Of a stretch of 64,000 nucleotides of DNA, positions 7,665 through 24,991 are shown one piece after another. The position numbers and the translations under genes are program-made. Origin of the DNA: Convolutriloba macropyga (Eukaryota); the NCBI RefSeq assembly GCF_964194025.1, contig NW_027451014.1:1-64000 (forward strand), read 5' to 3'. Within the stretch, counting starts at the first letter, position 1; each line of letters opens with the position of its first letter. The notes under the pieces are model-generated. The model worked only from the letters and a program-made list of their open reading frames with translations. It did not search any database and was not told the DNA's origin.

Positions 7665-10600
7665 ATGAGCGCAGACAGGGAGCCATCACGGTCGGGGAGG
7701 GCGATCATCACACTAGTTATTGGAATCCTGGTGCGTAGCTAGAAAATCGTCTCCCGTCGCGCAGCTTCAAGTTCCTTCTGGCACGTGCATACAACACATC
7801 TGCGCAAAATGAGCCAACTCTCCGCTCGCTCATTGGATCGATCGATTCTGAGCGCACCGGCTCCGTAACCAAACCCCCCCCCCCCCCCGGCCCCCGCCCT
7901 CCTCCCTGAAATCAGCATGCCCCAGTACCAGTTGAGGTTCCGAAATCCTATGCCTGGATCAGGAGCTAAATCAAGTGTCGGGTGTCGCCAGGTCGGACTT
8001 CTGTTCGACGAGGCGTTCTTGAGGAGCGGCTACCACCCTTCCTCCCTAACTGTGGATTCGTCCTTGCTGAAAAGTGCAGTGACGAATGACCCAGAGCTTG
8101 AGGTGGGGACGACACCATTCACATCATATGAGCAGATTTGACAATGGCGAATCGCATGGATGCGTGTTGGCATCTGCTTAAGTATAACCATGCCCCTTTC
8201 ATCACCAGAGTGTCCTACGTCTTGACAAACTAAGGGAGGAGAGTTCTACTCAGCAAAAGGCATTACAAGAGGCTCGTCGGCAATACGAACTCCTGGAGAC
8301 GAGGTGAGAAACTGTGCTATCTGGCCAATCCACTGACACCACGAGTTGTGTTAGTGCCACGATTTCCTCTGTTGTCTCAGACCGGCTTTGTCTTCCACAG
8401 GTACAAAAACCTGGAGCAAGATTTCCATGCTGCCATCAACATGGAACGACCCCAGGCAGCAGATGCCCCCCGACTTCCTCTTACGGTATCATGCACAATC
8501 AACCCTGGCAACGTGTTGCTGTGATCCTTCATATTTATAGTCATATGCATACCACTGTGTCAATGATGGGTAGTGATGAACTGGACACTGACAACCCCCC
8601 CCCCCCCCCCCCCCCCCGAACACACACCCTCCCGGTGCTCGGTCTACCCTGGCTGCAGCCGGACTGCATCCTCGCTGTGAGGGCGGCACGGCAACGGGCG
8701 TGCCCGTGTGACGCCAACATGTGCCCTGTCCTTTACACTGGGGAGATGTGTGACTACCCAGCTGACGATCTTCCACAGTGCCTTGCACCCTGGAAGTTGC
8801 CTTATGAGAACCCTGATGGAGAGGACTTTCACATGTGGACCCTGAACAAGGAGACCATTACTAGCAAAAACATGCACAGTCTCAACCTGGGAAAATTCGA
8901 TGCATCCGAGGACGTTGTGGTACCACTGTCTCGAGAGGTGGGGATTTTCAGATTTGTATCCCCCCCCCCCCCCCCCCAATATAAAGAACACAGTAACTGC
9001 ACATGGCAGACTGGGCTGGATATTGAGCACGAAGTGAAATGTTCAACACGATCTGTCCTTGCAATTTCTACGCTCCTATGCCCTAATTGGGCAGATCGGG
9101 GCCGTTTCGGAGAGGACGGGCGCCTACGATCAGACATGCACAGAATCATTCTCACGGCGTCTGTCATCGTTGGATACCCACAGCAGCAACTTGTGTTTGT
9201 GTTCCGAAAGGTCATGGATCAGCTTCCGGCGAAAGAAGTGCTAAACCCCAAGACCTACCGCAGCTGTGCGATTGTGGGTTCCAGTGATAATCTGCTGCGT
9301 CAGTTTCTTGGCGATGAGATTAATGATCATGATGTTGTGATTCGTTTCAATGGAGCGACCACAAAGGTATTCCCGCCCCCCTTCTAAGCACCAAGCACAT
9401 GCCCATCCCAACCCCACCCAAAGTCCAGACGTAGCTTAGTTCACAACCCTGGGTGTCCCCAACTTTGCCATCCCCTCTGATCCATGTACTTAGCAGGTCG
9501 CCCCGCCATTGCACTGACACCATACAAACAAAGCCATCTGTTATGCTTGCTGCAGTTGTTTGCTGCAGCTAGTTCTGTGGTGGCATCCTGTGACAAGAGT
9601 CTGTTCTCGTTTTCAGGGATACGAAAAGCACGTCGGCCGCATCACAAACCTCCGATTTGTGACCAATGCATGGCTGGGCTTTCGGGTAACCTGCCCTGCC
9701 TACAAATCCCCCCCCCCCCCCCCCCCCCCCCGTCTCTGCCTCTCCTGACAGCAATGGGAATTGCATCCAGCGATAACCTAGCCACTCTGTCCGAGTACTT
9801 TTGGTGGTTAAACACTGTGTGACCATTGTAGCCTCGTTTGGCCAAAAACGGAACAGTCAAGCTCTGCATGCATTCATTGATCCTGTCATTGGGAACCCTC
9901 GAACAAACAATGATGGCCTGCCCTGCCCCGGCTCCTATTTTGCGCAGGAATTTCCTCAAGAAACGGTAATTTACTTGGACCCGTTCAGGTGGGCCGGCCC
10001 TGGGTTGCCCGCCCGCATTACAGACCAGTGCCACTGTATTCAGTCCATATAGGCTCAGATCAGACTTGGCAAAGCGTGCTGTAGATATCTCACTGCAAGA
10101 TGTGTACCACCTGCCTGGTGTGTCCCATGAATGTGCAGTGGCGATCCCTTGTATGGATGCGATCGAGTCACAGAGTGCACAAACACCAGTGCCACTGCCA
10201 ACAAGTTCCTGGAAGAGCTGAAGCTGTTTCGTCAACTGCGTGTTACTCAGCTGCACCCCAAGGTGGGAGCTTCCACTTCTGCATGAAGCCCGGCACCTGT
10301 ATCAACAAGCCGCACACAAACACGTCAGGCACTTGGTACCCAACTACAGTCTTCTAAGCCGCGCGCCTGTTGTTTCCCAGGTTGCTAAATGGATGGCATC
10401 ACCTTACTTTCACAAGGGGAAACACTGGATGCTGTCGTCTGGCTTCCAGGTAGAGTTGACTTACGAGCTGTAGAGGCATCCACTTGTTCATCACAGTTTG
10501 TTTACACGCAGTAGTGTTTTCGTACGCTGCCATAATTGATTGGCGTTTCACCTCGGCATCCTGCTGCTAAATGCGTTCACAGGTGGCGCTGCTGATGTCT

Positions 10601-17744: not shown

Positions 17745-18215
17745 GCTTCTCTCCTTACAAGTCGCATAGCCAAGGCAGCACTATACGCTTTTCCTTGCGG
17801 CATTGACAGTTGAAGCAGGAGCCGTCGCACGGCATGTGCGGGCAGTGGGCACCGGCACTAGCGCAGTGGCGCTAGTACTAGAGTGTAGCACTAGTAGTCG
17901 CAGCAGGTGGTCGTAGGTGGGTACCCTACGCTTCCAGATGTACGGCCCTGGCTGAGTACGCGTACGTAATGATCCCCAATATTCCAATAGATAGGAGTAC
18001 AATACGCGTATAGATAGAGCGATCCAGCTACGGGCGAAGTACCCGGGTACTAAAAAAAGTACCCGGGTACTAGCGCCCATTCGGATAAGTCATAAAAGCC
18101 TAGGGTGGCGCGTAGATGAGGCCATGATGGCCGGGGGCCTCGAACAAGCAGGGCCATGGGTGCCCGAAGGCCCCCTTATTTGCTGGTGATGTGGTTCGAC
18201 TCATTCGAGCATATA

Positions 18216-19595
18216 CACTGCTCCACAAAAGTCCGTACCCCCTTGTAAATCCCTATCACACAAATTGTGGCAATTGTCTGTCATCTATGCACTTCCTGAC
18301 TGCCATTCACGTTAGTTTCAAAGACCACCGCAAACATAATTTAGCCATTCATAGTCTTGGAGAAGAATCCACGGCATGTGGCCTTTTCGAGCCCCTGGAA
18401 TATCAGTTAAAGGCTAGCCACACTCTTGAAAATCGCCCAAGAAATCGGTACGTGAAATAGTACTGAGCAGCCGTAGGCCATACGGTGGCAGGTTGGTCAT
18501 TGATGCCAAGCTGTCACAATAGTGCACCGCTGAAAAATATCAAATTGCAAGTCCAATTCGTCATTGAGGAGGAAATGGCGTCCATATGTGGCCATTGGGT
18601 GAGGCAGAAGCTTGCCCGAATTCATGGGCAGCCCTGTGAGCGAAAAACCCAATTTCGTCATACGGGCTCAGAACGGAGCGCTGTCAAGGCCAGCGTGAGC
18701 AGAATTTTCGCCGTCCCGGGCCAAGGGCTGGGGCTTAGCCCGGGTCAAAATCGATTGAGACCATAAAAAAGGGTACCTTGTTTCCTCACTAAAAAGATAT
18801 GGCCATTTGAAGTTTTCGTGCAGCCTGAAACTGGGCCAAGTCGCCATATTTTGGCACAAATGCCTCATTGTAATGACCACTCCCTAAGGATGATGCATGC
18901 ACTCCCATCCCACTCACATGAGGTGCAAAAACAAGCATTTTCAAGGCCTCCCCCACCTTTGGCATGGGCCCCTTTCCTACTCCCTTTCCAACCTTTTTTG
19001 CATTTTTCCAGTGAGAGGGTTAAAGGGGCACCACTGGTCAGGGCTCCCCTTACCACGTTGGGCAATGGCCCTCCCCACCAACCCTTGTGCACGATGCACT
19101 ATCACCATGGGTTGGTTGGCGCACGAATAGCATGGCTTGAGTGTCTCATCCATGGTGGAAGGACTCCAGATGGTGTCAACAAGGGGCCAAAATCGGGTCG
19201 CTCGAAATCACCAGCAAAGCACCACCAACTCATGGGGCCCTAGTGTTGTAGGGTGTGGCCTTATGGGTCCAAGCTATGCATGACGAGAGACACATTATCC
19301 TTGCTACGATGTTATAAGGAACTGAGAAGTGATCACTCATGTCTCGAAATGTGACAATATTTTTAGTTTCAGGCAAAATCGAAGTAAACTCAACATGGAA
19401 TTGCCTGACCATGGGCACCCCCACCCACCATATAATGCATAACCTTACCATTGCGTTGACATCTAAGCCATGTAACGAGTCATAATGCATTGTTCTGCAG
19501 CCAAGGGAGCCAATGATGGTTTCGTAACTCAATGCATTGGCCTTTGACAAAATTATGGGAAAACTTTAGGGGGTGCAAACTTTTGTGGAGCAGTG
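18216..19595. mobile_element. Element A copy 1: 1380-bp non-autonomous TIR element
   Basis: TIRs CACTGCTCCACAAAAGTCCGTACCCCCT / AGGGGGTGCAAACTTTTGTGGAGCAGTG (17 bp perfect, 25/28 overall). Preceded by TA. No ORF over 141 aa and none recognisable. Confidence 0.9.
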
Positions 19596-19636
19596 TGGGG
19601 CAGTAGTTTCCCCACCAGATTCACATACATAGGAGT

Positions 19637-19641
19637 TTACA
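19637..19641 (-). terminator. Candidate chlorophyte-type polyadenylation signal TGTAA in the transposase 3' UTR (present in every T copy)
   Basis: Minus strand AAGCAC-TGTAA-ACTCC, ~30 nt after the TAA stop and ~40 nt before the element end. Confidence 0.45.
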
Positions 19642-19669
19642 GTGCTTTAACCCAGTTGCATTCTTGGGC

Positions 19670-20746
19670 TTAATACTTTGTGACGCCCCCTCTAGCATCT
19701 ATGCATGCTTGCACTCGGTTTGGGATGGAGTTGTAGAATTTCATGAGTGTCTCATGGGGCATGTTGTCCCATTCTTCTTGCAGCGCATTTTGGAAATTTT
19801 GTTTTGTGAGCCCTGGTCTGTTGTTCACTTTCTTGGCTACCCAGCCCCATACATTCTCAATCCAGCTGAGATCGGGGCTTTTGGCAGGCCAATCTAGTAC
19901 CTTGAAGTCTTCTTGCTCAGATAGCCACCTAGTAACCTTCTTGGCAGTGTGGGCCTTGGCATTGTCTTGCTGCCAGACCCAATAAGCACCCATCCTGGCC
20001 CTGCTTGTGTGGGGCATCCTGGGCCTCATGAGTTCCCTGGCTGCTGGGATGAGCTTCTCCTTCAAGAGATCCAAGTACACCGTTGCATTCACGCCTTTGG
20101 AGTCCGCATGCATGCCTGTGGTCCCCACAGTGGCAAACAGGGGGCTCTTTCCATACTTGGTCACCACTGCATAGGCATGCACCTTGAAGCTGTGAGTTTC
20201 TGCAGCAATTACTGGTGGCTCTTCTCCATACATCACCCACACCTTGTCCCCAGGGCCACGAGATACAAGCCAGAAGTTCTTGCTGTCACTGATAGCCGTG
20301 TCTTCCCATGGGCTATTGCCATACAAGCCTTGCATCTCGATGCAAAACTGCTCCCTGGCTGTCTTGTGTTGTTCAGTCAGAGTTGGCTTCTTTTTGGGCT
20401 TCATACGCTGCCCCATGTGCTTTCGAATGAACTTTCTGATAGACTCTGCACTCGCTTCAATGCCCAGGCTGTCCCTCACGCGATTAGCGATGATAGAGCA
20501 CGCCAATTGTTGACGGACGCCGTCCTCCACCAGCTGCATTAGCTCAGGGTTGGTTGCTGCCAGCTTGGCAGGCCTCCCAACCCGCTTACTGTCCTGCACG
20601 TCTTGGGTGAGCCTGTGACGCTGCACCCATTTCTTGACTGTCTTGACTCCGCATTTGTGCTTACGTGCCACTTGCTTGAAGTTGCCAAGCTGTTCGTAGC
20701 TCAAAACTAGCCGCCATCGCTTGGCGACACTCGTAGGAGAGCGCAT
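19670..20746 (-). CDS. IS630/Tc1/mariner DD35E transposase (358 aa from ATG), copy T1
   Basis: N-terminal HTH region (QVARKHKCGVKTVKKWVQR), GRP motif, KPKKKPTLT linker, ISD, WQQDNAKAH, WPAKSPDLSWIENVWG and C-terminal CIDARGG.TKY. 35 residues lie between the second D and the E. The ORF-track start is GTG; the first ATG (ACCATG) is 12 nt downstream. Confidence 0.97.
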   Translation of the reverse strand: MRSPTSVAKRWRLVLSYEQLGNFKQVARKHKCGVKTVKKWVQRHRLTQDVQDSKRVGRPAKLAATNPELMQLVEDGVRQQLACSIIANRVRDSLGIEASAESIRKFIRKHMGQRMKPKKKPTLTEQHKTAREQFCIEMQGLYGNSPWEDTAISDSKNFWLVSRGPGDKVWVMYGEEPPVIAAETHSFKVHAYAVVTKYGKSPLFATVGTTGMHADSKGVNATVYLDLLKEKLIPAARELMRPRMPHTSRARMGAYWVWQQDNAKAHTAKKVTRWLSEQEDFKVLDWPAKSPDLSWIENVWGWVAKKVNNRPGLTKQNFQNALQEEWDNMPHETLMKFYNSIPNRVQACIDARGGVTKY

Positions 20747-20794
20747 GGTGAAGCGCACAGCAAAATACAGTATGAGCCCACCCCAGAAGTTTGA

Positions 20795-20805
20795 GCTATA
20801 TTTAG
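20795..20805 (-). promoter_or_regulatory. TATA-like element upstream of the transposase
   Basis: Minus strand CTAAATATAGC about 50-55 nt upstream of the ATG; same in all T copies. Confidence 0.35.
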
Positions 20806-20933
20806 AAATTGTGGAGAATTCACTGCCTCAAGGCCTTTGGCCAGTCAGGAAGCATTAAGTGGCATCATAGAACCACACGTCAGCATTAAAACGTACCAAC
20901 GTACCACTGATAATCCTTTGTTCTTTTGCCCCA

Positions 20934-22313
20934 CACTGCTCCACAAAAGTCCGTACCCCCTTGTAAATCCCTATCACACAAATTGTGGCAATTGTCTGTC
21001 ATCTATGCACTTCCTGACTGCCATTCACGTTAGTTTCAAAGACCACCGCAAACATAATTTAGCCATTCATAGTCTTGGAGAAGAATCCACGGCATGTGGC
21101 CTTTTCGAGCCCCTGGAATATCAGTTAAAGGCTAGCCACACTCTTGAAAATCGCCCAAGAAATCGGTACGTGAAATAGTACTGAGCAGCCGTAGGCCATA
21201 CGGTGGCAGGTTGGTCATTGATGCCAAGCTGTCACAATAGTGCACCGCTGAAAAATATCAAATTGCAAGTCCAATTCGTCATTGAGGAGGAAATGGCGTC
21301 CATATGTGGCCATTGGGTGAGGCAGAAGCTTGCCCGAATTCATGGGCAGCCCTGTGAGCGAAAAACCCAATTTCGTCATACGGGCTCAGAACGGAGCGCT
21401 GTCAAGGCCAGCGTGAGCAGAATTTTCGCCGTCCCGGGCCAAGGGCTGGGGCTTAGCCCGGGTCAAAATCGATTGAGACCATAAAAAAGGGTACCTTGTT
21501 TCCTCACTAAAAAGATATGGCCATTTGAAGTTTTCGTGCAGCCTGAAACTGGGCCAAGTCGCCATATTTTGGCACAAATGCCTCATTGTAATGACCACTC
21601 CCTAAGGATGATGCATGCACTCCCATCCCACTCACATGAGGTGCAAAAACAAGCATTTTCAAGGCCTCCCCCACCTTTGGCATGGGCCCCTTTCCTACTC
21701 CCTTTCCAACCTTTTTTGCATTTTTCCAGTGAGAGGGTTAAAGGGGCACCACTGGTCAGGGCTCCCCTTACCACGTTGGGCAATGGCCCTCCCCACCAAC
21801 CCTTGTGCACGATGCACTATCACCATGGGTTGGTTGGCGCACGAATAGCATGGCTTGAGTGTCTCATCCATGGTGGAAGGACTCCAGATGGTGTCAACAA
21901 GGGGCCAAAATCGGGTCGCTCGAAATCACCAGCAAAGCACCACCAACTCATGGGGCCCTAGTGTTGTAGGGTGTGGCCTTATGGGTCCAAGCTATGCATG
22001 ACGAGAGACACATTATCCTTGCTACGATGTTATAAGGAACTGAGAAGTGATCACTCATGTCTCGAAATGTGACAATATTTTTAGTTTCAGGCAAAATCGA
22101 AGTAAACTCAACATGGAATTGCCTGACCATGGGCACCCCCACCCACCATATAATGCATAACCTTACCATTGCGTTGACATCTAAGCCATGTAACGAGTCA
22201 TAATGCATTGTTCTGCAGCCAAGGGAGCCAATGATGGTTTCGTAACTCAATGCATTGGCCTTTGACAAAATTATGGGAAAACTTTAGGGGGTGCAAACTT
22301 TTGTGGAGCAGTG
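20934..22313. mobile_element. Element A copy 2
   Basis: Same TIRs as copy 1; flanked directly by T cores (CCCCA|CACTG...CAGTG|TGGGG), no TA. Confidence 0.9.
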
Positions 22314-22387
22314 TGGGGCAGTAGTTTCCCCACCAGATTCACATACATAGGAGTTTACAGTGCTTTAACCCAGTTGCATTCTTGGGC

Positions 22388-23464
22388 TTAATACTTTGTG
22401 ACGCCCCCTCTAGCATCTATGCATGCTTGCACTCGGTTTGGGATGGAGTTGTAGAATTTCATGAGTGTCTCATGGGGCATGTTGTCCCATTCTTCTTGCA
22501 GCGCATTTTGGAAATTTTGTTTTGTGAGCCCTGGTCTGTTGTTCACTTTCTTGGCTACCCAGCCCCATACATTCTCAATCCAGCTGAGATCGGGGCTTTT
22601 GGCAGGCCAATCTAGTACCTTGAAGTCTTCTTGCTCAGATAGCCACCTAGTAACCTTCTTGGCAGTGTGGGCCTTGGCATTGTCTTGCTGCCAGACCCAA
22701 TAAGCACCCATCCTGGCCCTGCTTGTGTGGGGCATCCTGGGCCTCATGAGTTCCCTGGCTGCTGGGATGAGCTTCTCCTTCAAGAGATCCAAGTACACCG
22801 TTGCATTCACGCCTTTGGAGTCCGCATGCATGCCTGTGGTCCCCACAGTGGCAAACAGGGGGCTCTTTCCATACTTGGTCACCACTGCATAGGCATGCAC
22901 CTTGAAGCTGTGAGTTTCTGCAGCAATTACTGGTGGCTCTTCTCCATACATCACCCACACCTTGTCCCCAGGGCCACGAGATACAAGCCAGAAGTTCTTG
23001 CTGTCACTGATAGCCGTGTCTTCCCATGGGCTATTGCCATACAAGCCTTGCATCTCGATGCAAAACTGCTCCCTGGCTGTCTTGTGTTGTTCAGTCAGAG
23101 TTGGCTTCTTTTTGGGCTTCATACGCTGCCCCATGTGCTTTCGAATGAACTTTCTGATAGACTCTGCACTCGCTTCAATGCCCAGGCTGTCCCTCACGCG
23201 ATTAGCGATGATAGAGCACGCCAATTGTTGACGGACGCCGTCCTCCACCAGCTGCATTAGCTCAGGGTTGGTTGCTGCCAGCTTGGCAGGCCTCCCAACC
23301 CGCTTACTGTCCTGCACGTCTTGGGTGAGCCTGTGACGCTGCACCCATTTCTTGACTGTCTTGACTCCGCATTTGTGCTTACGTGCCACTTGCTTGAAGT
23401 TGCCAAGCTGTTCGTAGCTCAAAACTAGCCGCCATCGCTTGGCGACACTCGTAGGAGAGCGCAT
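22388..23464 (-). CDS. DD35E transposase T2
   Basis: Protein identical to T1. Confidence 0.95.
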   Translation of the reverse strand: MRSPTSVAKRWRLVLSYEQLGNFKQVARKHKCGVKTVKKWVQRHRLTQDVQDSKRVGRPAKLAATNPELMQLVEDGVRQQLACSIIANRVRDSLGIEASAESIRKFIRKHMGQRMKPKKKPTLTEQHKTAREQFCIEMQGLYGNSPWEDTAISDSKNFWLVSRGPGDKVWVMYGEEPPVIAAETHSFKVHAYAVVTKYGKSPLFATVGTTGMHADSKGVNATVYLDLLKEKLIPAARELMRPRMPHTSRARMGAYWVWQQDNAKAHTAKKVTRWLSEQEDFKVLDWPAKSPDLSWIENVWGWVAKKVNNRPGLTKQNFQNALQEEWDNMPHETLMKFYNSIPNRVQACIDARGGVTKY

Positions 23465-23728
23465 GGTGAAGCGCACAGCAAAATACAGTATGAGCCCACC
23501 CCAGAAGTTTGAGCTATATTTAGAAATTGTGGAGAATTCACTGCCTCAAGGCCTTTGGCCAGTCAGGAAGCATTAAGTGGCATCATAGAACCACACGTCA
23601 GCATTAAAACGTACCAACGTACCACTGATAATCCTTTGTTCTTTTGCCCCACTGTGGGGCAGTAGTTTCCCCACCAGATTCACATACATAGGAGTTTACA
23701 GTGCTTTAACCCAGTTGCATTCTTGGGC

Positions 23729-24804
23729 TTAATACTTTGTGACGCCCCCTCTAGCATCTATGCATGCTTGCACTCGGTTTGGGATGGAGTTGTAGAATTT
23801 CATGAGTGTCTCATGGGGCATGTTGTCCCATTCTTCTTGCAGCGCATTTTGGAAATTTTGTTTTGTGAGCCCTGGTCTGTTGTTCACTTTCTTGCTACCC
23901 AGCCCCATACATTCTCAATCCAGCTGAGATCGGGGCTTTTGGCAGGCCAATCTAGTACCTTGAAGTCTTCTTGCTCAGATAGCCACCTAGTAACCTTCTT
24001 GGCAGTGTGGGCCTTGGCATTGTCTTGCTGCCAGACCCAATAAGCACCCATCCTGGCCCTGCTTGTGTGGGGCATCCTGGGCCTCATGAGTTCCCTGGCT
24101 GCTGGGATGAGCTTCTCCTTCAAGAGATCCAAGTACACCGTTGCATTCACGCCTTTGGAGTCCGCATGCATGCCTGTGGTCCCCACAGTGGCAAACAGGG
24201 GGCTCTTTCCATACTTGGTCACCACTGCATAGGCATGCACCTTGAAGCTGTGAGTTTCTGCAGCAATTACTGGTGGCTCTTCTCCATACATCACCCACAC
24301 CTTGTCCCCAGGGCCACGAGATACAAGCCAGAAGTTCTTGCTGTCACTGATAGCCGTGTCTTCCCATGGGCTATTGCCATACAAGCCTTGCATCTCGATG
24401 CAAAACTGCTCCCTGGCTGTCTTGTGTTGTTCAGTCAGAGTTGGCTTCTTTTTGGGCTTCATACGCTGCCCCATGTGCTTTCGAATGAACTTTCTGATAG
24501 ACTCTGCACTCGCTTCAATGCCCAGGCTGTCCCTCACGCGATTAGCGATGATAGAGCACGCCAATTGTTGACGGACGCCGTCCTCCACCAGCTGCATTAG
24601 CTCAGGGTTGGTTGCTGCCAGCTTGGCAGGCCTCCCAACCCGCTTACTGTCCTGCACGTCTTGGGTGAGCCTGTGACGCTGCACCCATTTCTTGACTGTC
24701 TTGACTCCGCATTTGTGCTTACGTGCCACTTGCTTGAAGTTGCCAAGCTGTTCGTAGCTCAAAACTAGCCGCCATCGCTTGGCGACACTCGTAGGAGAGC
24801 GCAT
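23729..24804 (-). pseudogene. DD35E transposase T3, frameshifted
   Basis: 1-bp deletion at ~23894 (CTTGCTACCC vs CTTGGCTACCC) truncates the protein after WGWVARK. Could be a sequencing error. Confidence 0.8.
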
Positions 24805-24991
24805 GGTGAAGCGCACAGCAAAATACAGTATGAGCCCACCCCAGAAGTTTGAGCTATATTTAGAAATTGTGGAGAATTCACTGCCTCAAGGCCTTTGGCC
24901 AGTCAGGAAGCATTAAGTGGCATCATAGAACCACACGTCAGCATTAAAACGTACCAACGTACCACTGATAATCCTTTGTTCTTTTGCCCCA

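Follow-up and report, generated by a model that had tools for sequence, protein, structure and literature searches.

The window, as the whole stretch of 64,000 nucleotides of Convolutriloba macropyga DNA analysed here is called, is occupied from position 18,216 onwards by a head-to-tail chain of two kinds of unit, a non-coding element named A and a unit named T, which carries an intact, Tc1-like transposase gene. This chain extends over at least 94 kb (94,000 bases). On the full contig (112,009 bp) it comprises 14 A and 56 T units, all 14 A copies being identical and the orientation being uniform for all 70 units; the array is still running at the contig end, at 112,009, and its right edge lies outside the assembly. 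The features of the locus are the following:

18216 to 64000, forward strand: portion of the array inside the window (6 A and 28 T), which runs on to the contig end at 112,009
18214 to 18215, no strand: TA dinucleotide beside the outermost A, forming the left edge of the array, read as ...CATATA followed by CACTGCTCC
18216 to 19595, forward strand: first A copy, 1380 bp, non-coding, with 100% identity to the remaining A copies
19593 to 19595, forward strand: GTG, the terminal triplet belonging to A, at the A-T joint; it abuts TA in solo copies too
19596 to 20933, reverse strand: T core, 1338 bp, TGGGGCA...TGCCCCA, without both terminal triplets, with inverted ends of 10-14 nt
19670 to 20746, reverse strand: T transposase gene, 358 aa from ATG, with DDE_3 and HTH_Tnp_Tc3_2 domains
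20934 to 22313, forward strand: the A copy of the earlier note, CAC...GTG, 1380 bp
20934 to 20961, forward strand: left terminal inverted repeat of A, beginning CACTGCTCCACAAAAGT (A positions 1-28 against 1380-1353)
22286 to 22313, reverse strand: right terminal inverted repeat of A
21380 to 21545, reverse strand: internal block conserved in A, containing the invariant hairpin CCGGGC...GCCCGG
22314 to 23651, reverse strand: the following T core
23652 to 23654, forward strand: CTG, one triplet common to two T units (CAG at other T-T joints)

The unit period exceeds the 500-bp limit of Tandem Repeats Finder, which reports no repeat, and BLAST mapping was used instead. In this census, the window contains 6 A copies of 1380 bp, with 100% identity among them, and 28 T cores, each 1338 bp long, with 99.85-100% identity, with the copies of each unit in a single strand orientation and none of them interrupted. 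The spacing of A is irregular, with 1 to 14 T units separating successive copies. The segment 19579-22320 holds an A-T joint at 19595/19596, a T core, a T-A joint at 20933/20934, the A copy at 20934-22313 and a further A-T joint.

An exact-string search finds the A-T joint, GGAGCAGTG-TGGGGCA, at 6 places in the window, and the T-A joint, TGCCCCA-CACTGCTCC, at 5. These are the 11 mixed joints described in the earlier note, and at each of them A is indeed complete (CAC...GTG) and T is without its terminal triplet; in the whole contig the mixed joints amount to 27, with invariant triplets. Every joint, whether A-T or T-T, has the same anatomy, that is, a core, 3 nt and a core. Among the 22 T-T joints of the window, TGCCCCA-CTG-TGGGGCA appears 16 times and the corresponding CAG version 6 times, and the 41 T-T joints of the contig are divided into 24 CTG, 16 CAG and a single 2-nt joint, CG. 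A second array, formed by the unrelated unit T2, has 10 CTG and 11 CAG joints, and in the two arrays together a clean C(T/A)G is present at 61/62 T-T joints. At no site is the repeat more polymorphic than at the central base of the T-T joint, where the minor allele is present in 16/41 joints, against at most 11/56 at any core position. The T end branches into A or T in contigs built from this organism's runs, of which one belongs to a second sample, and one such run contains CTG and CAG joints together.

A TA target duplication between units is absent from all internal joints of the array. There are no A-A joints in the window or the contig (a random order of units would give this with P=0.35 and P=0.04, respectively), and a genome-wide search for a generic A-end/A-end pattern gave 0 matches; insertion of A within a T body occurs in 0 cases in the window. 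The absence of target duplications, of A-A joints and of A copies inside T, which the earlier note had pointed out, is thereby borne out in the window. Double insertion, a possible source of abutted units, was ruled out as the origin of these joints, since the internal ones are without TA (PMC5932611).

Unit A has terminal inverted repeats of 27-28 bp, with a start of the type CA(C/G)TG, and no ORF of note, and the comparison of the T protein with A, A2 and A3 by tblastn gave no match; thus, A is not recognisable as a decayed copy of T. Five full solo copies of A exist, each one flanked as TA-CAC...GTG-TA, plus one truncated copy with TA at its right end. Dispersed copies of the A1 family (at least 6) and of the A3 family (at least 6) occupy at least 12 unrelated TA sites. 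Since these dispersed relatives sit at unrelated sites with TA duplications, A may be regarded, from its sequence and flanks, as an ordinary non-coding, non-autonomous element of the Tc1/mariner type. Membership of the CACTA/EnSpm group, which would be compatible with CACTG ends and 3-bp duplications, was ruled out by the TA duplications at the solo copies. The internal block of A recurs in the A elements of three further pairs (A', A6 and A7), with its position and its orientation relative to T unchanged. When A elements are compared with each other by tblastx, matches fall in all frames, so that this block is not coding; its consensus fold contains an invariant hairpin with no informative covariation, and an Rfam search on A and T gave no match. 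A itself encodes nothing, and the T transposase is the only candidate linked gene for its mobilisation.

The T transposase matches the Pfam families DDE_3 (44.2 bits, cut-off 28.6) and HTH_Tnp_Tc3_2, an N-terminal paired-like HTH (37.1 bits, cut-off 31.5). By motif inspection, the catalytic triad is formed by a candidate first D, D158, followed by D265 and E301, with DD35E spacing. Its dyad type is A246/non-K248, as reported for the Bari, Minos and Tc3 groups (PMC6943129). The dN/dS ratio with respect to a copy in other sampled DNA is 0.16, and the transposase is under purifying selection.

The two ends of T have only CAGTGGGGCA in common (10 nt, or 12/14), which is less than the terminal inverted repeats of about 20 bp or more that characterise the Tc1/mariner superfamily, and in T2 to T4 the ends have 5-9 nt in common. 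The short inverted ends of the T cores co-vary between families, for instance TTGGA/TCCAA and TGGGAATTAT/ATAATTTCCCA. A comparison of the T ends with the A terminal inverted repeat revealed no sequence similarity suggestive of a common binding site. No T copies were found outside the array of the contig, and hence no T flank showing a TA duplication. A reading in which T would be a TG...CA element flanked by a duplication of 3 bp was rejected, being unnatural for the superfamily and in conflict with the solo A copies. Further arrays lie on C4013 and C1584, and single T-like matches on C317, C337 and C539.

The arrays are capped by A on both sides. The leftmost copy (18216), whose outer end is the twelfth A end in the window, abuts unique DNA ending in TA. 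The same TA-A edge is also present in two further arrays of this genome, and one locus, L062, shows a complete structure composed of TA, A, T, T, A and TA. Altogether, an A end beside TA is found at 7/7 of the array edges seen, always with complete A ends and no partial units. A search for an empty site, or for a second locus of the same family, that would indicate movement as a unit found none.

The rule of core, triplet and core is obeyed by 10 T/A pairs, some of them found in this genome and others in metagenome or other assemblies, and in all 10 the triplet of the mixed joint is A's version. In the same comparison, the triplet of an A end abutting TA is the same as that found at its T joint, and the motif of the A terminal inverted repeat is conserved across the A-type partners. 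A T'+A' unit in another assembly has a T that is 87-90% identical and an A that is 79% identical. The related arrays are mostly plain (A+T)n, including 2.7-kb collapsed units, with a single T-T joint in C492. Several unrelated T families, each with its own array, coexist in one genome. A search of the DNA for the spliced leader of dinoflagellates gave no match. In three arrays of this genome A terminates in CAC/GTG, and one relative, L060, has mixed A ends, one of CAG type and one of CAC type; because of this CAG-type end, the preservation of CAC/GTG by A is not universal.

The arrangement of units in the array also reveals how the joints have multiplied. A block A-T-T-T-T-T is found twice, with the same SNPs (762A and 521T) and the same CAG/CTG/CAG/CAG spacers, and a block A-T-T(762A) is found 4 times, one of them bearing a private SNP. 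Because such multi-unit blocks recur identically, the 11 mixed joints are copies of a few events and not independent ones, and therefore their uniformity by itself is weak evidence. The formation of mixed joints was a rare event; they are passed on together with the T+A pair, and inside the array their number has grown through segmental duplication or unequal exchange. The earlier note had set against its own models a scenario in which all A copies derive from one ancestral A-T joint spread by unequal crossing-over, and within the array this is largely what the repeated blocks indicate.

The joints coincide with a known type of transposase product. They fall exactly between the two strand nicks, 3 nt apart, of a Tc1/mariner cut, and the geometry described in the earlier note is right in this respect. 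The T-T joints have, moreover, the junction type published for Sleeping Beauty circles and footprints, with one common triplet, C(T/A)G, both variants of which are seen. In circle junctions of Sleeping Beauty, the central T:T mismatch is predicted to resolve to CTG or CAG, and sequenced circles revealed simple end religation, the footprints being TACAGTA/TACTGTA (PMC6943129).

On these grounds, the array is probably a co-inherited chain of Tc1/mariner-type A and T units, in which staggered cuts by the transposase were rejoined by host end-joining. The ends cut by the transposase would carry 3-nt 3' overhangs, which would be annealed by the end-joining machinery of the host. When T meets T (CTG vs CTG), C:G and G:C would pair, and resolution of the central T:T mismatch would lead to CTG or CAG. 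When T meets A (CTG vs GTG), the sole pairing would be that of the 3'-terminal G of A with the inner C of T; later, the unpaired 3' end of T would be trimmed and refilled from the A strand, so that A's triplet would be retained. This would agree with the earlier proposal that the 3' strand of A is joined to the recessed 5' end of T. Finally, no pairing would be possible between two A ends (GTG vs GTG). An unusual conservative reaction of a DDE transposase, which the earlier note had invoked, is not needed, as standard Tc1/mariner staggered cleavage followed by host end-joining would suffice (PMC6943129).

Several observations count against this account. The overhangs of the unit ends are alike, and free ligation would also give inverted joints, but the orientation is uniform; therefore, end-joining needs either a pairing of left and right ends by the transposase or the loss of unstable long palindromes. 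Moreover, where the A of a pair has CAG/CTG ends, a central mismatch alone would be expected, yet A's version is always found; random resolution accounts for this constancy less well than a single ancient origin or a strand bias would. The inverted ends of T are also very short, and their cleavage by any transposase is putative.

Two other interpretations had been advanced in the earlier note. According to one of them, A would be a satellite inserted site-specifically, each copy separately, at a cleaved T-T junction serving as an att-like site. The location of A exactly at junctions and never within T, the identity of 14/14 A copies and the presence of A's triplet at mixed joints in all 10 pairs, as expected if only the 3' ends of A join the recessed 5' ends of T, would be in accordance with it. 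The flanks of A across the genome contradict such targeting, as copies of the A1 and A3 families are dispersed at unrelated sites with TA duplications; in addition, the repeated multi-unit blocks imply that A was multiplied together with its T neighbours, diverged pairs have in common, by inheritance, the association of T with A and the orientation of the internal A block relative to T, and all the A copies have one orientation though the two ends of A are alike. An att-type cassette has a single specific target and a tyrosine or serine recombinase, whereas A has neither, the only gene of the repeat being that of a DDE transposase, and this proposal is very unlikely. According to the other interpretation, the ancestral array was (A+T)n and the T-T joints are footprints of A excision, T never having been cut as a transposon. 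The ancestral A+T repeat stands, taking into account that the T+A unit is also present in DNA sampled elsewhere and that the A elements of three further pairs share the internal block, identically oriented with respect to T; the predominance of plain (A+T)n among the related arrays points in the same direction. For an A with CAG/CTG ends, the canonical excision footprint would be exactly C(A/T)G (PMC6943129), and at a common triplet the nicks for A excision and for T end cleavage coincide, so that chemically both are the same cut. It is the precise loss of A, restoring a T terminus as C(T/A)G, that fits poorly here, because an A that terminates in CAC/GTG would, on excision, leave unpaired overhangs (CAC vs CAC), from which varied footprints would be expected and not the 61/62 clean joints seen. 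The co-varying short inverted ends of T also suggest that the T ends are themselves recognised, and excision of A as the source of the T-T joints is thus unlikely, even if it deserves more credit than site-specific insertion.

The array could also have arisen as has been proposed for Bari1, for which a circle-based origin has been suggested (PMC8834629; PMC5932611), if an excised circle of T (or T+A) had given a rolling-circle concatemer that re-entered the chromosome, with later mutation and unequal exchange. The strictly head-to-tail array and the joints of the circle-junction type would be explained in this way, as would a pure T5 array on a contig whose name ends in c (taken as circular), the joints of which are uniformly CTG. 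One circle, however, would give one junction type, and two arrays have CTG and CAG in a ratio of about 1:1; the irregular spacing of A, by 1 to 14 T units, is no simple rolling-circle product, and 7/7 edges are complete A ends beside TA, in place of the partial units of Bari1. Such an origin has therefore a rather small chance of being correct. An artefact, in which the order of the units or their joints would have been produced by assembling and polishing a repeat, might be suspected from the near-perfect identity of the copies, from the termination of the contig inside the array, and from one 2-nt joint and two 1-bp deletions resembling read errors. Nevertheless, in runs of this organism, a second sample included, the branching of contigs falls precisely at the joints, CTG and CAG appear in one run, and identical joints are present in metagenome and other assemblies from different assemblers, which makes this explanation extremely improbable.

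In addition to the joining of staggered cuts by the host, it can be tentatively suggested that A-(T)n-A constitutes a two-part autonomous Tc1/mariner transposon, in which T would supply the transposase and A the inverted repeats on which it acts. If this were true, many families of the partnership would have arisen by co-divergence, both in these worms and in relatives known from marine metagenomes, and the joints with a shared triplet would be built-in sites for staggered cutting and rejoining, by which the array expands, shrinks and sheds solo A copies. These arrays may reveal a division of labour between a unit that carries the gene and a unit that carries the ends. The arrays bear on how cut-and-paste transposons become long tandem arrays, and several independent ones are available in this genome; the joints carry the exact signature of transposase cuts rejoined by the host, and the partner element, the defined edges, the copies in other sampled DNA and the transposase maintained by selection make the origin of the array testable.

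The closest known case is that of the heterochromatic Bari1 clusters of Drosophila melanogaster, with about 80 copies at h39 and a small X-linked cluster. Bari1 provides the only classic full-length arrays of the Tc1 family, which have been proposed to originate from aberrant transposase action or from circles (PMC8834629; PMC5932611), and which a 2022 review describes as being without comparable example (PMC8834629). In both systems, full-length elements of the Tc1 family are lined up precisely head to tail, terminal nucleotides are lost in a constant manner at each joint, and TA is missing between copies. In contrast to Bari1, where 2 nt are lost, 3 nt are shared per joint here; a second, non-coding element with terminal inverted repeats is interleaved and caps the array beside TA, in contrast to the partial unit at the end of a Bari1 array; and several unrelated families have arrays in one genome, the pairing has been conserved in DNA sampled elsewhere, and purifying selection acts on the transposase.

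With Sleeping Beauty circles and footprints, these arrays share the end-C(T/A)G-end structure, which results when 3-nt 3' overhangs anneal and leave a T:T mismatch in the centre (PMC6943129). The Sleeping Beauty products are extrachromosomal dead ends or empty donor sites in cell culture, whereas the junction described here forms a fixed part of chromosomal arrays, which measure tens of kb, and also links two different elements. Tandem dimers of P element, hobo and R1 expand by unequal exchange into arrays with higher-order repeats (McGurk and Barbash 2018), a pattern that the repeated blocks of this array match. Tandem dimers originated by double insertion keep the target-site duplication in their joints, unlike the internal joints of this array, from which TA is absent. 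In bacteria, composite transposons consist of two IS arms around a cargo, as in Tn10, and IS dimers with abutted ends are known, for example (IS30)2. The array resembles them in that its outer ends are the ends of flanking A units with TA, and in having internal abutted ends with a short spacer; unlike the bacterial composites, its arms are non-coding, its cargo encodes the transposase and its host is a eukaryote. In sum, this two-part variant of a Bari1-like array is new.

The locus holds a Bari1-like transposon array of two parts; its joints bear the signature of transposase cutting and re-joining via 3-nt overhangs, followed by spread through unequal exchange. Exact-string search and BLAST mapping show that a head-to-tail chain of two units, A and T, fills the window from 18216 to its end, with all copies of both in a single orientation; the six A copies are 100% identical to one another, and the 28 T copies share 99.85-100% identity.

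Features of the two units
Unit A: 1380 bp, CACTGCTCC...GGAGCAGTG, inverted ends of 27-28 bp
Unit T, core: 1338 bp, TGGGGCA...TGCCCCA
19670-20746, minus strand: T open reading frame, 358 aa, Pfam DDE_3 and HTH_Tnp_Tc3_2 domains
21380-21545: block of ~165 nt inside A, bearing an invariant hairpin (CCGGGCTAAGCCC..GCCCTTGGCCCGG) plus the conserved motif GGCCATATCTTTTT

Motif inspection gives the T transposase a D..D(35)E catalytic spacing. After the second catalytic D, its residues 265-270 read DNAKAH, equal to the A246/non-K248 dyad reported for the Bari, Minos, Tc3 and Impala groups; Sleeping Beauty lacking K248 alone excises without integrating and makes circles (PMC6943129). The T inverted ends measure only 5-14 nt across T families, and their co-variation from family to family suggests that they may matter. 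An ORF scan found no frame of note in A, and protein-versus-DNA comparison no similarity to the T protein; the 165-nt block is non-coding and matches no Rfam family.

The 11 mixed joints of the window, six GGAGCA-GTG-TGGGGCA and five TGCCCCA-CAC-TGCTCC, are exactly as the earlier note described them, with A complete and T lacking its terminal triplet. The window also holds 22 T-T joints, TGCCCCA-C(T/A)G-TGGGGCA, and neither an A-A joint nor an interrupted T. The contig (C1918), whose first 64 kb make up the window, is 112 kb long; it terminates within the array and carries 14 A and 56 T units, with triplets invariant at all 27 mixed joints, and CTG at 24, CAG at 16 and CG at one of the 41 T-T joints. 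Of all positions in the repeat, the central base of the T-T joint varies most, and in two unrelated arrays CTG and CAG occur at about 1:1. The CG joint (G000:C1918:97801-97802) is only 2 nt long, and two T copies have 1-bp deletions, one of which (240G; 23884-24816) shortens the frame to 310 aa; the short joint and the deletions either are genuine variants or stem from homopolymer errors in long reads. No T copy was found elsewhere in the assembly by DNA search or by end pattern with up to 2 mismatches, nor a second one by T protein search, whose next best match is 48% identical.

The joints are also supported by same-organism sequencing runs, one of them from a second sample, where contigs branch exactly at the joints and both CTG and CAG T-T forms are present within one run. 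Both there and in a related organism, A has variable flanks, which is what dispersed copies next to TA should show. Word depth over 20700-22560 was ~1150 for T and ~340 for A in run X4 (~1.1 billion letters), and 24 and 8.5 in run X1; the T:A ratio of ~3:1 is in line with the contig, and the absolute depths suggest that the array may far exceed its assembled size, or may differ between samples.

Outside the array, six A-family copies (88-95% identity) were found on other contigs, five of them full and solo in unrelated DNA, with CAC...GTG between two TA dinucleotides, and the sixth truncated, with TA at its right end. Pattern search adds further solo copies, as well as at least six of the A3 family, every one adjoining TA, and the leftmost A of the array itself adjoins ...CATATA. 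Thus, the triplets are A's own ends and a T-T junction is not required as a target, so that the proposal that A targets this junction like an att site is not supported; judged from its flanks, A is an ordinary TA-inserting element.

Array edges visible in this genome (C contigs) and in other or metagenome assemblies (L contigs)
C1918, left: complete A end + TA
C492, left: complete A end + TA
C2199, left, and C4560, right: complete A end + TA
L062, both sides: A, T, T, A between TA and TA, left terminus slightly decayed
L074, right: complete A end + TA

A accounts for about one fifth to one half of the units, yet all seven visible edges consist of a complete A end next to TA. That A-(T)n-A moves as a composite autonomous transposon, with the enzyme from T and the ends from A, is a tentative and rather doubtful reading. 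Some 140 bp upstream of the C1918 edge, at 18040-18075, there is a direct repeat of GTACCCGGGTACTA with an A run between its copies. Further upstream, ~9 kb from the array, lies an open frame (8314-9387, plus strand) that ends in a match to Pfam Glyco_transf_29 (sialyltransferase, E 8e-12) and probably represents a host-gene exon. This exon, like the sequencing-run records (metagenomes of marine sediment, reef and salt marsh), fits a marine animal as the source of the 1.18-Gb eukaryotic genome.

A search with the T protein revealed other Tc1-like families, with transposases 38-48% identical to that of T, each forming its own long array in this genome (contigs C2199, C492, C1584, C4013 and C4560; periods 1308-1345 bp). 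C2199/C4560 and C492 contain their own A-type partners, and the pairs T2/A2 (C2199) and T3/A3 (C492) were read. Neither A2 nor A3 has detectable internal similarity to A; their ends are related to those of A (CACTACTCCAATAAAG, CACCCCTCCACAAAAG), and the joints follow those of the main array (Tcore-CAC-Acore, Acore-GTG-Tcore, T-T as C(T/A)G), the mixed ones being invariant by pattern search (21/21 and 15/15). Transposase homologues come chiefly from metagenome or Logan assemblies, in contigs of ~2.7 kb; the ones that were read consist of either a collapsed T+A unit or a short array, with identical joint anatomy.

Triplets at the T-to-A and A-to-T joints of ten T/A pairs, this genome and other assemblies
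CAC, GTG: four pairs
CAG, CTG: four pairs
CAG, GTG: one pair
CAG, CCG: one pair

Where A ends adjoin TA (pairs 1, 4 and 10, and the solo copies) the triplet equals that at the T joint. Thus, the earlier claim that A always keeps its own ends extends to a general rule over the ten pairs, the CAC/GTG spelling being family-specific. Contig ctg14747c (ENA ERZ25878734, 16,188 bp; the suffix c taken as circular) consists purely of tandem copies of a related T unit, with a period of 1283 bp and only CTG joints. It represents either a multimeric circle outside the chromosomes or a tandem repeat closed artificially by the assembler.

The idea of an ancestral A+T repeat gains support from L060, a contig of a different assembly that carries a T'+A' unit, with T' 87% identical to T in nucleotides over the element (89.5% over the coding region) and A' 79% identical to A. 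The hairpin block is common to A, A', A6 and A7, constant in position and orientation relative to the T gene, with partner transposases just ~60% identical; another block, common to A4 and A8, lies at the same place. T and T' differ by dN 0.057 and dS 0.36 (dN/dS 0.16), indicating that the transposase, in this genome confined to the array, is kept by selection. On this comparative evidence, the T+A pairing is inherited.

In Tc1/mariner cleavage, the transposase nicks the 3' strand exactly at the element end but the 5' strand a few nucleotides further in, so that 3' overhangs result. The Sleeping Beauty stagger measures 3 nt, with TAC(A/T)GTA footprints after host end-joining; in the circularised excised element a central T:T mismatch is expected, resolved to CTG or CAG, and sequenced circles included simple end religation (PMC6943129). 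The T-T joint here is exactly that C(T/A)G junction. With a shared triplet, the nick positions of the left unit's right end and the right unit's left end would coincide, so that at any joint one cut per strand would suffice to give cohesive ends for re-ligation. In the CAC/GTG families, the overhang sequences would account for all three junction rules of the earlier note: T with T (CTG against CTG) would form two base pairs around the central mismatch; between T and A (CTG against GTG), pairing would involve only A's 3'-terminal G with T's inner C, and T's unpaired 3' end would be trimmed and refilled from the A strand, keeping the A triplet; and A with A (GTG against GTG) would not pair, which fits the lack of A-A joints. 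Most likely, then, the joints arose from transposase cuts and host end-joining via 3-nt overhangs, the T transposase being the sole linked candidate for cutting A. The junction geometry of the insertion model is thereby retained, close to this scheme, and ordinary excision chemistry with end-joining suffices for it.

Double insertion is excluded, since TA is absent from the joints. The T-T joints could instead be footprints of A loss from the ancestral repeat, which works cleanly for A elements with CAG/CTG ends; however, with the CAC/GTG ends of this genome's arrays, loss would leave non-pairing overhangs. Cutting and end-joining, for its part, offers alike overhangs at both unit ends, yet all units point one way, so one has to invoke either a transposase that pairs left with right ends or a loss of long palindromes. 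In the CAG/CTG pairs the joint is always A's version, although a central mismatch alone is expected, and this is better explained by one ancient T+A joint origin, or by strand bias, than by random resolution time after time. Nor are the 11 window joints, by their arrangement, 11 separate events: the block [A, T, T(762A), T, T(762A), T(521T)], with spacers CAG, CTG, CAG and CAG, occurs twice in the contig (35791-43872 and 65365-73446), and [A, T, T(762A)] in four tandem copies (73447-87003), one with a private SNP. A-T joints were thus copied along with the adjoining units, through segmental duplication or unequal exchange, the very scenario that the earlier note had set against its own models.

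A literature search on acoels found no paper describing such arrays. The closest known system is found in Drosophila melanogaster, where the Tc1-like element Bari1 forms precise head-to-tail clusters, with the first two nucleotides missing from every copy. Aberrant action of the transposase and copying by rolling circle are given as the origin (PMC8834629; PMC5932611), and a 2022 review knew no comparable example (PMC8834629). The core head-to-tail anatomy is common to both. However, Bari1 loses 2 nt per copy where the A/T arrays have a 3-nt shared triplet, and the latter further differ in containing a second interleaved element, in A-capped edges adjoining TA, in the presence of several families in one genome, each with its own array, and in their conservation in other sampled DNA.
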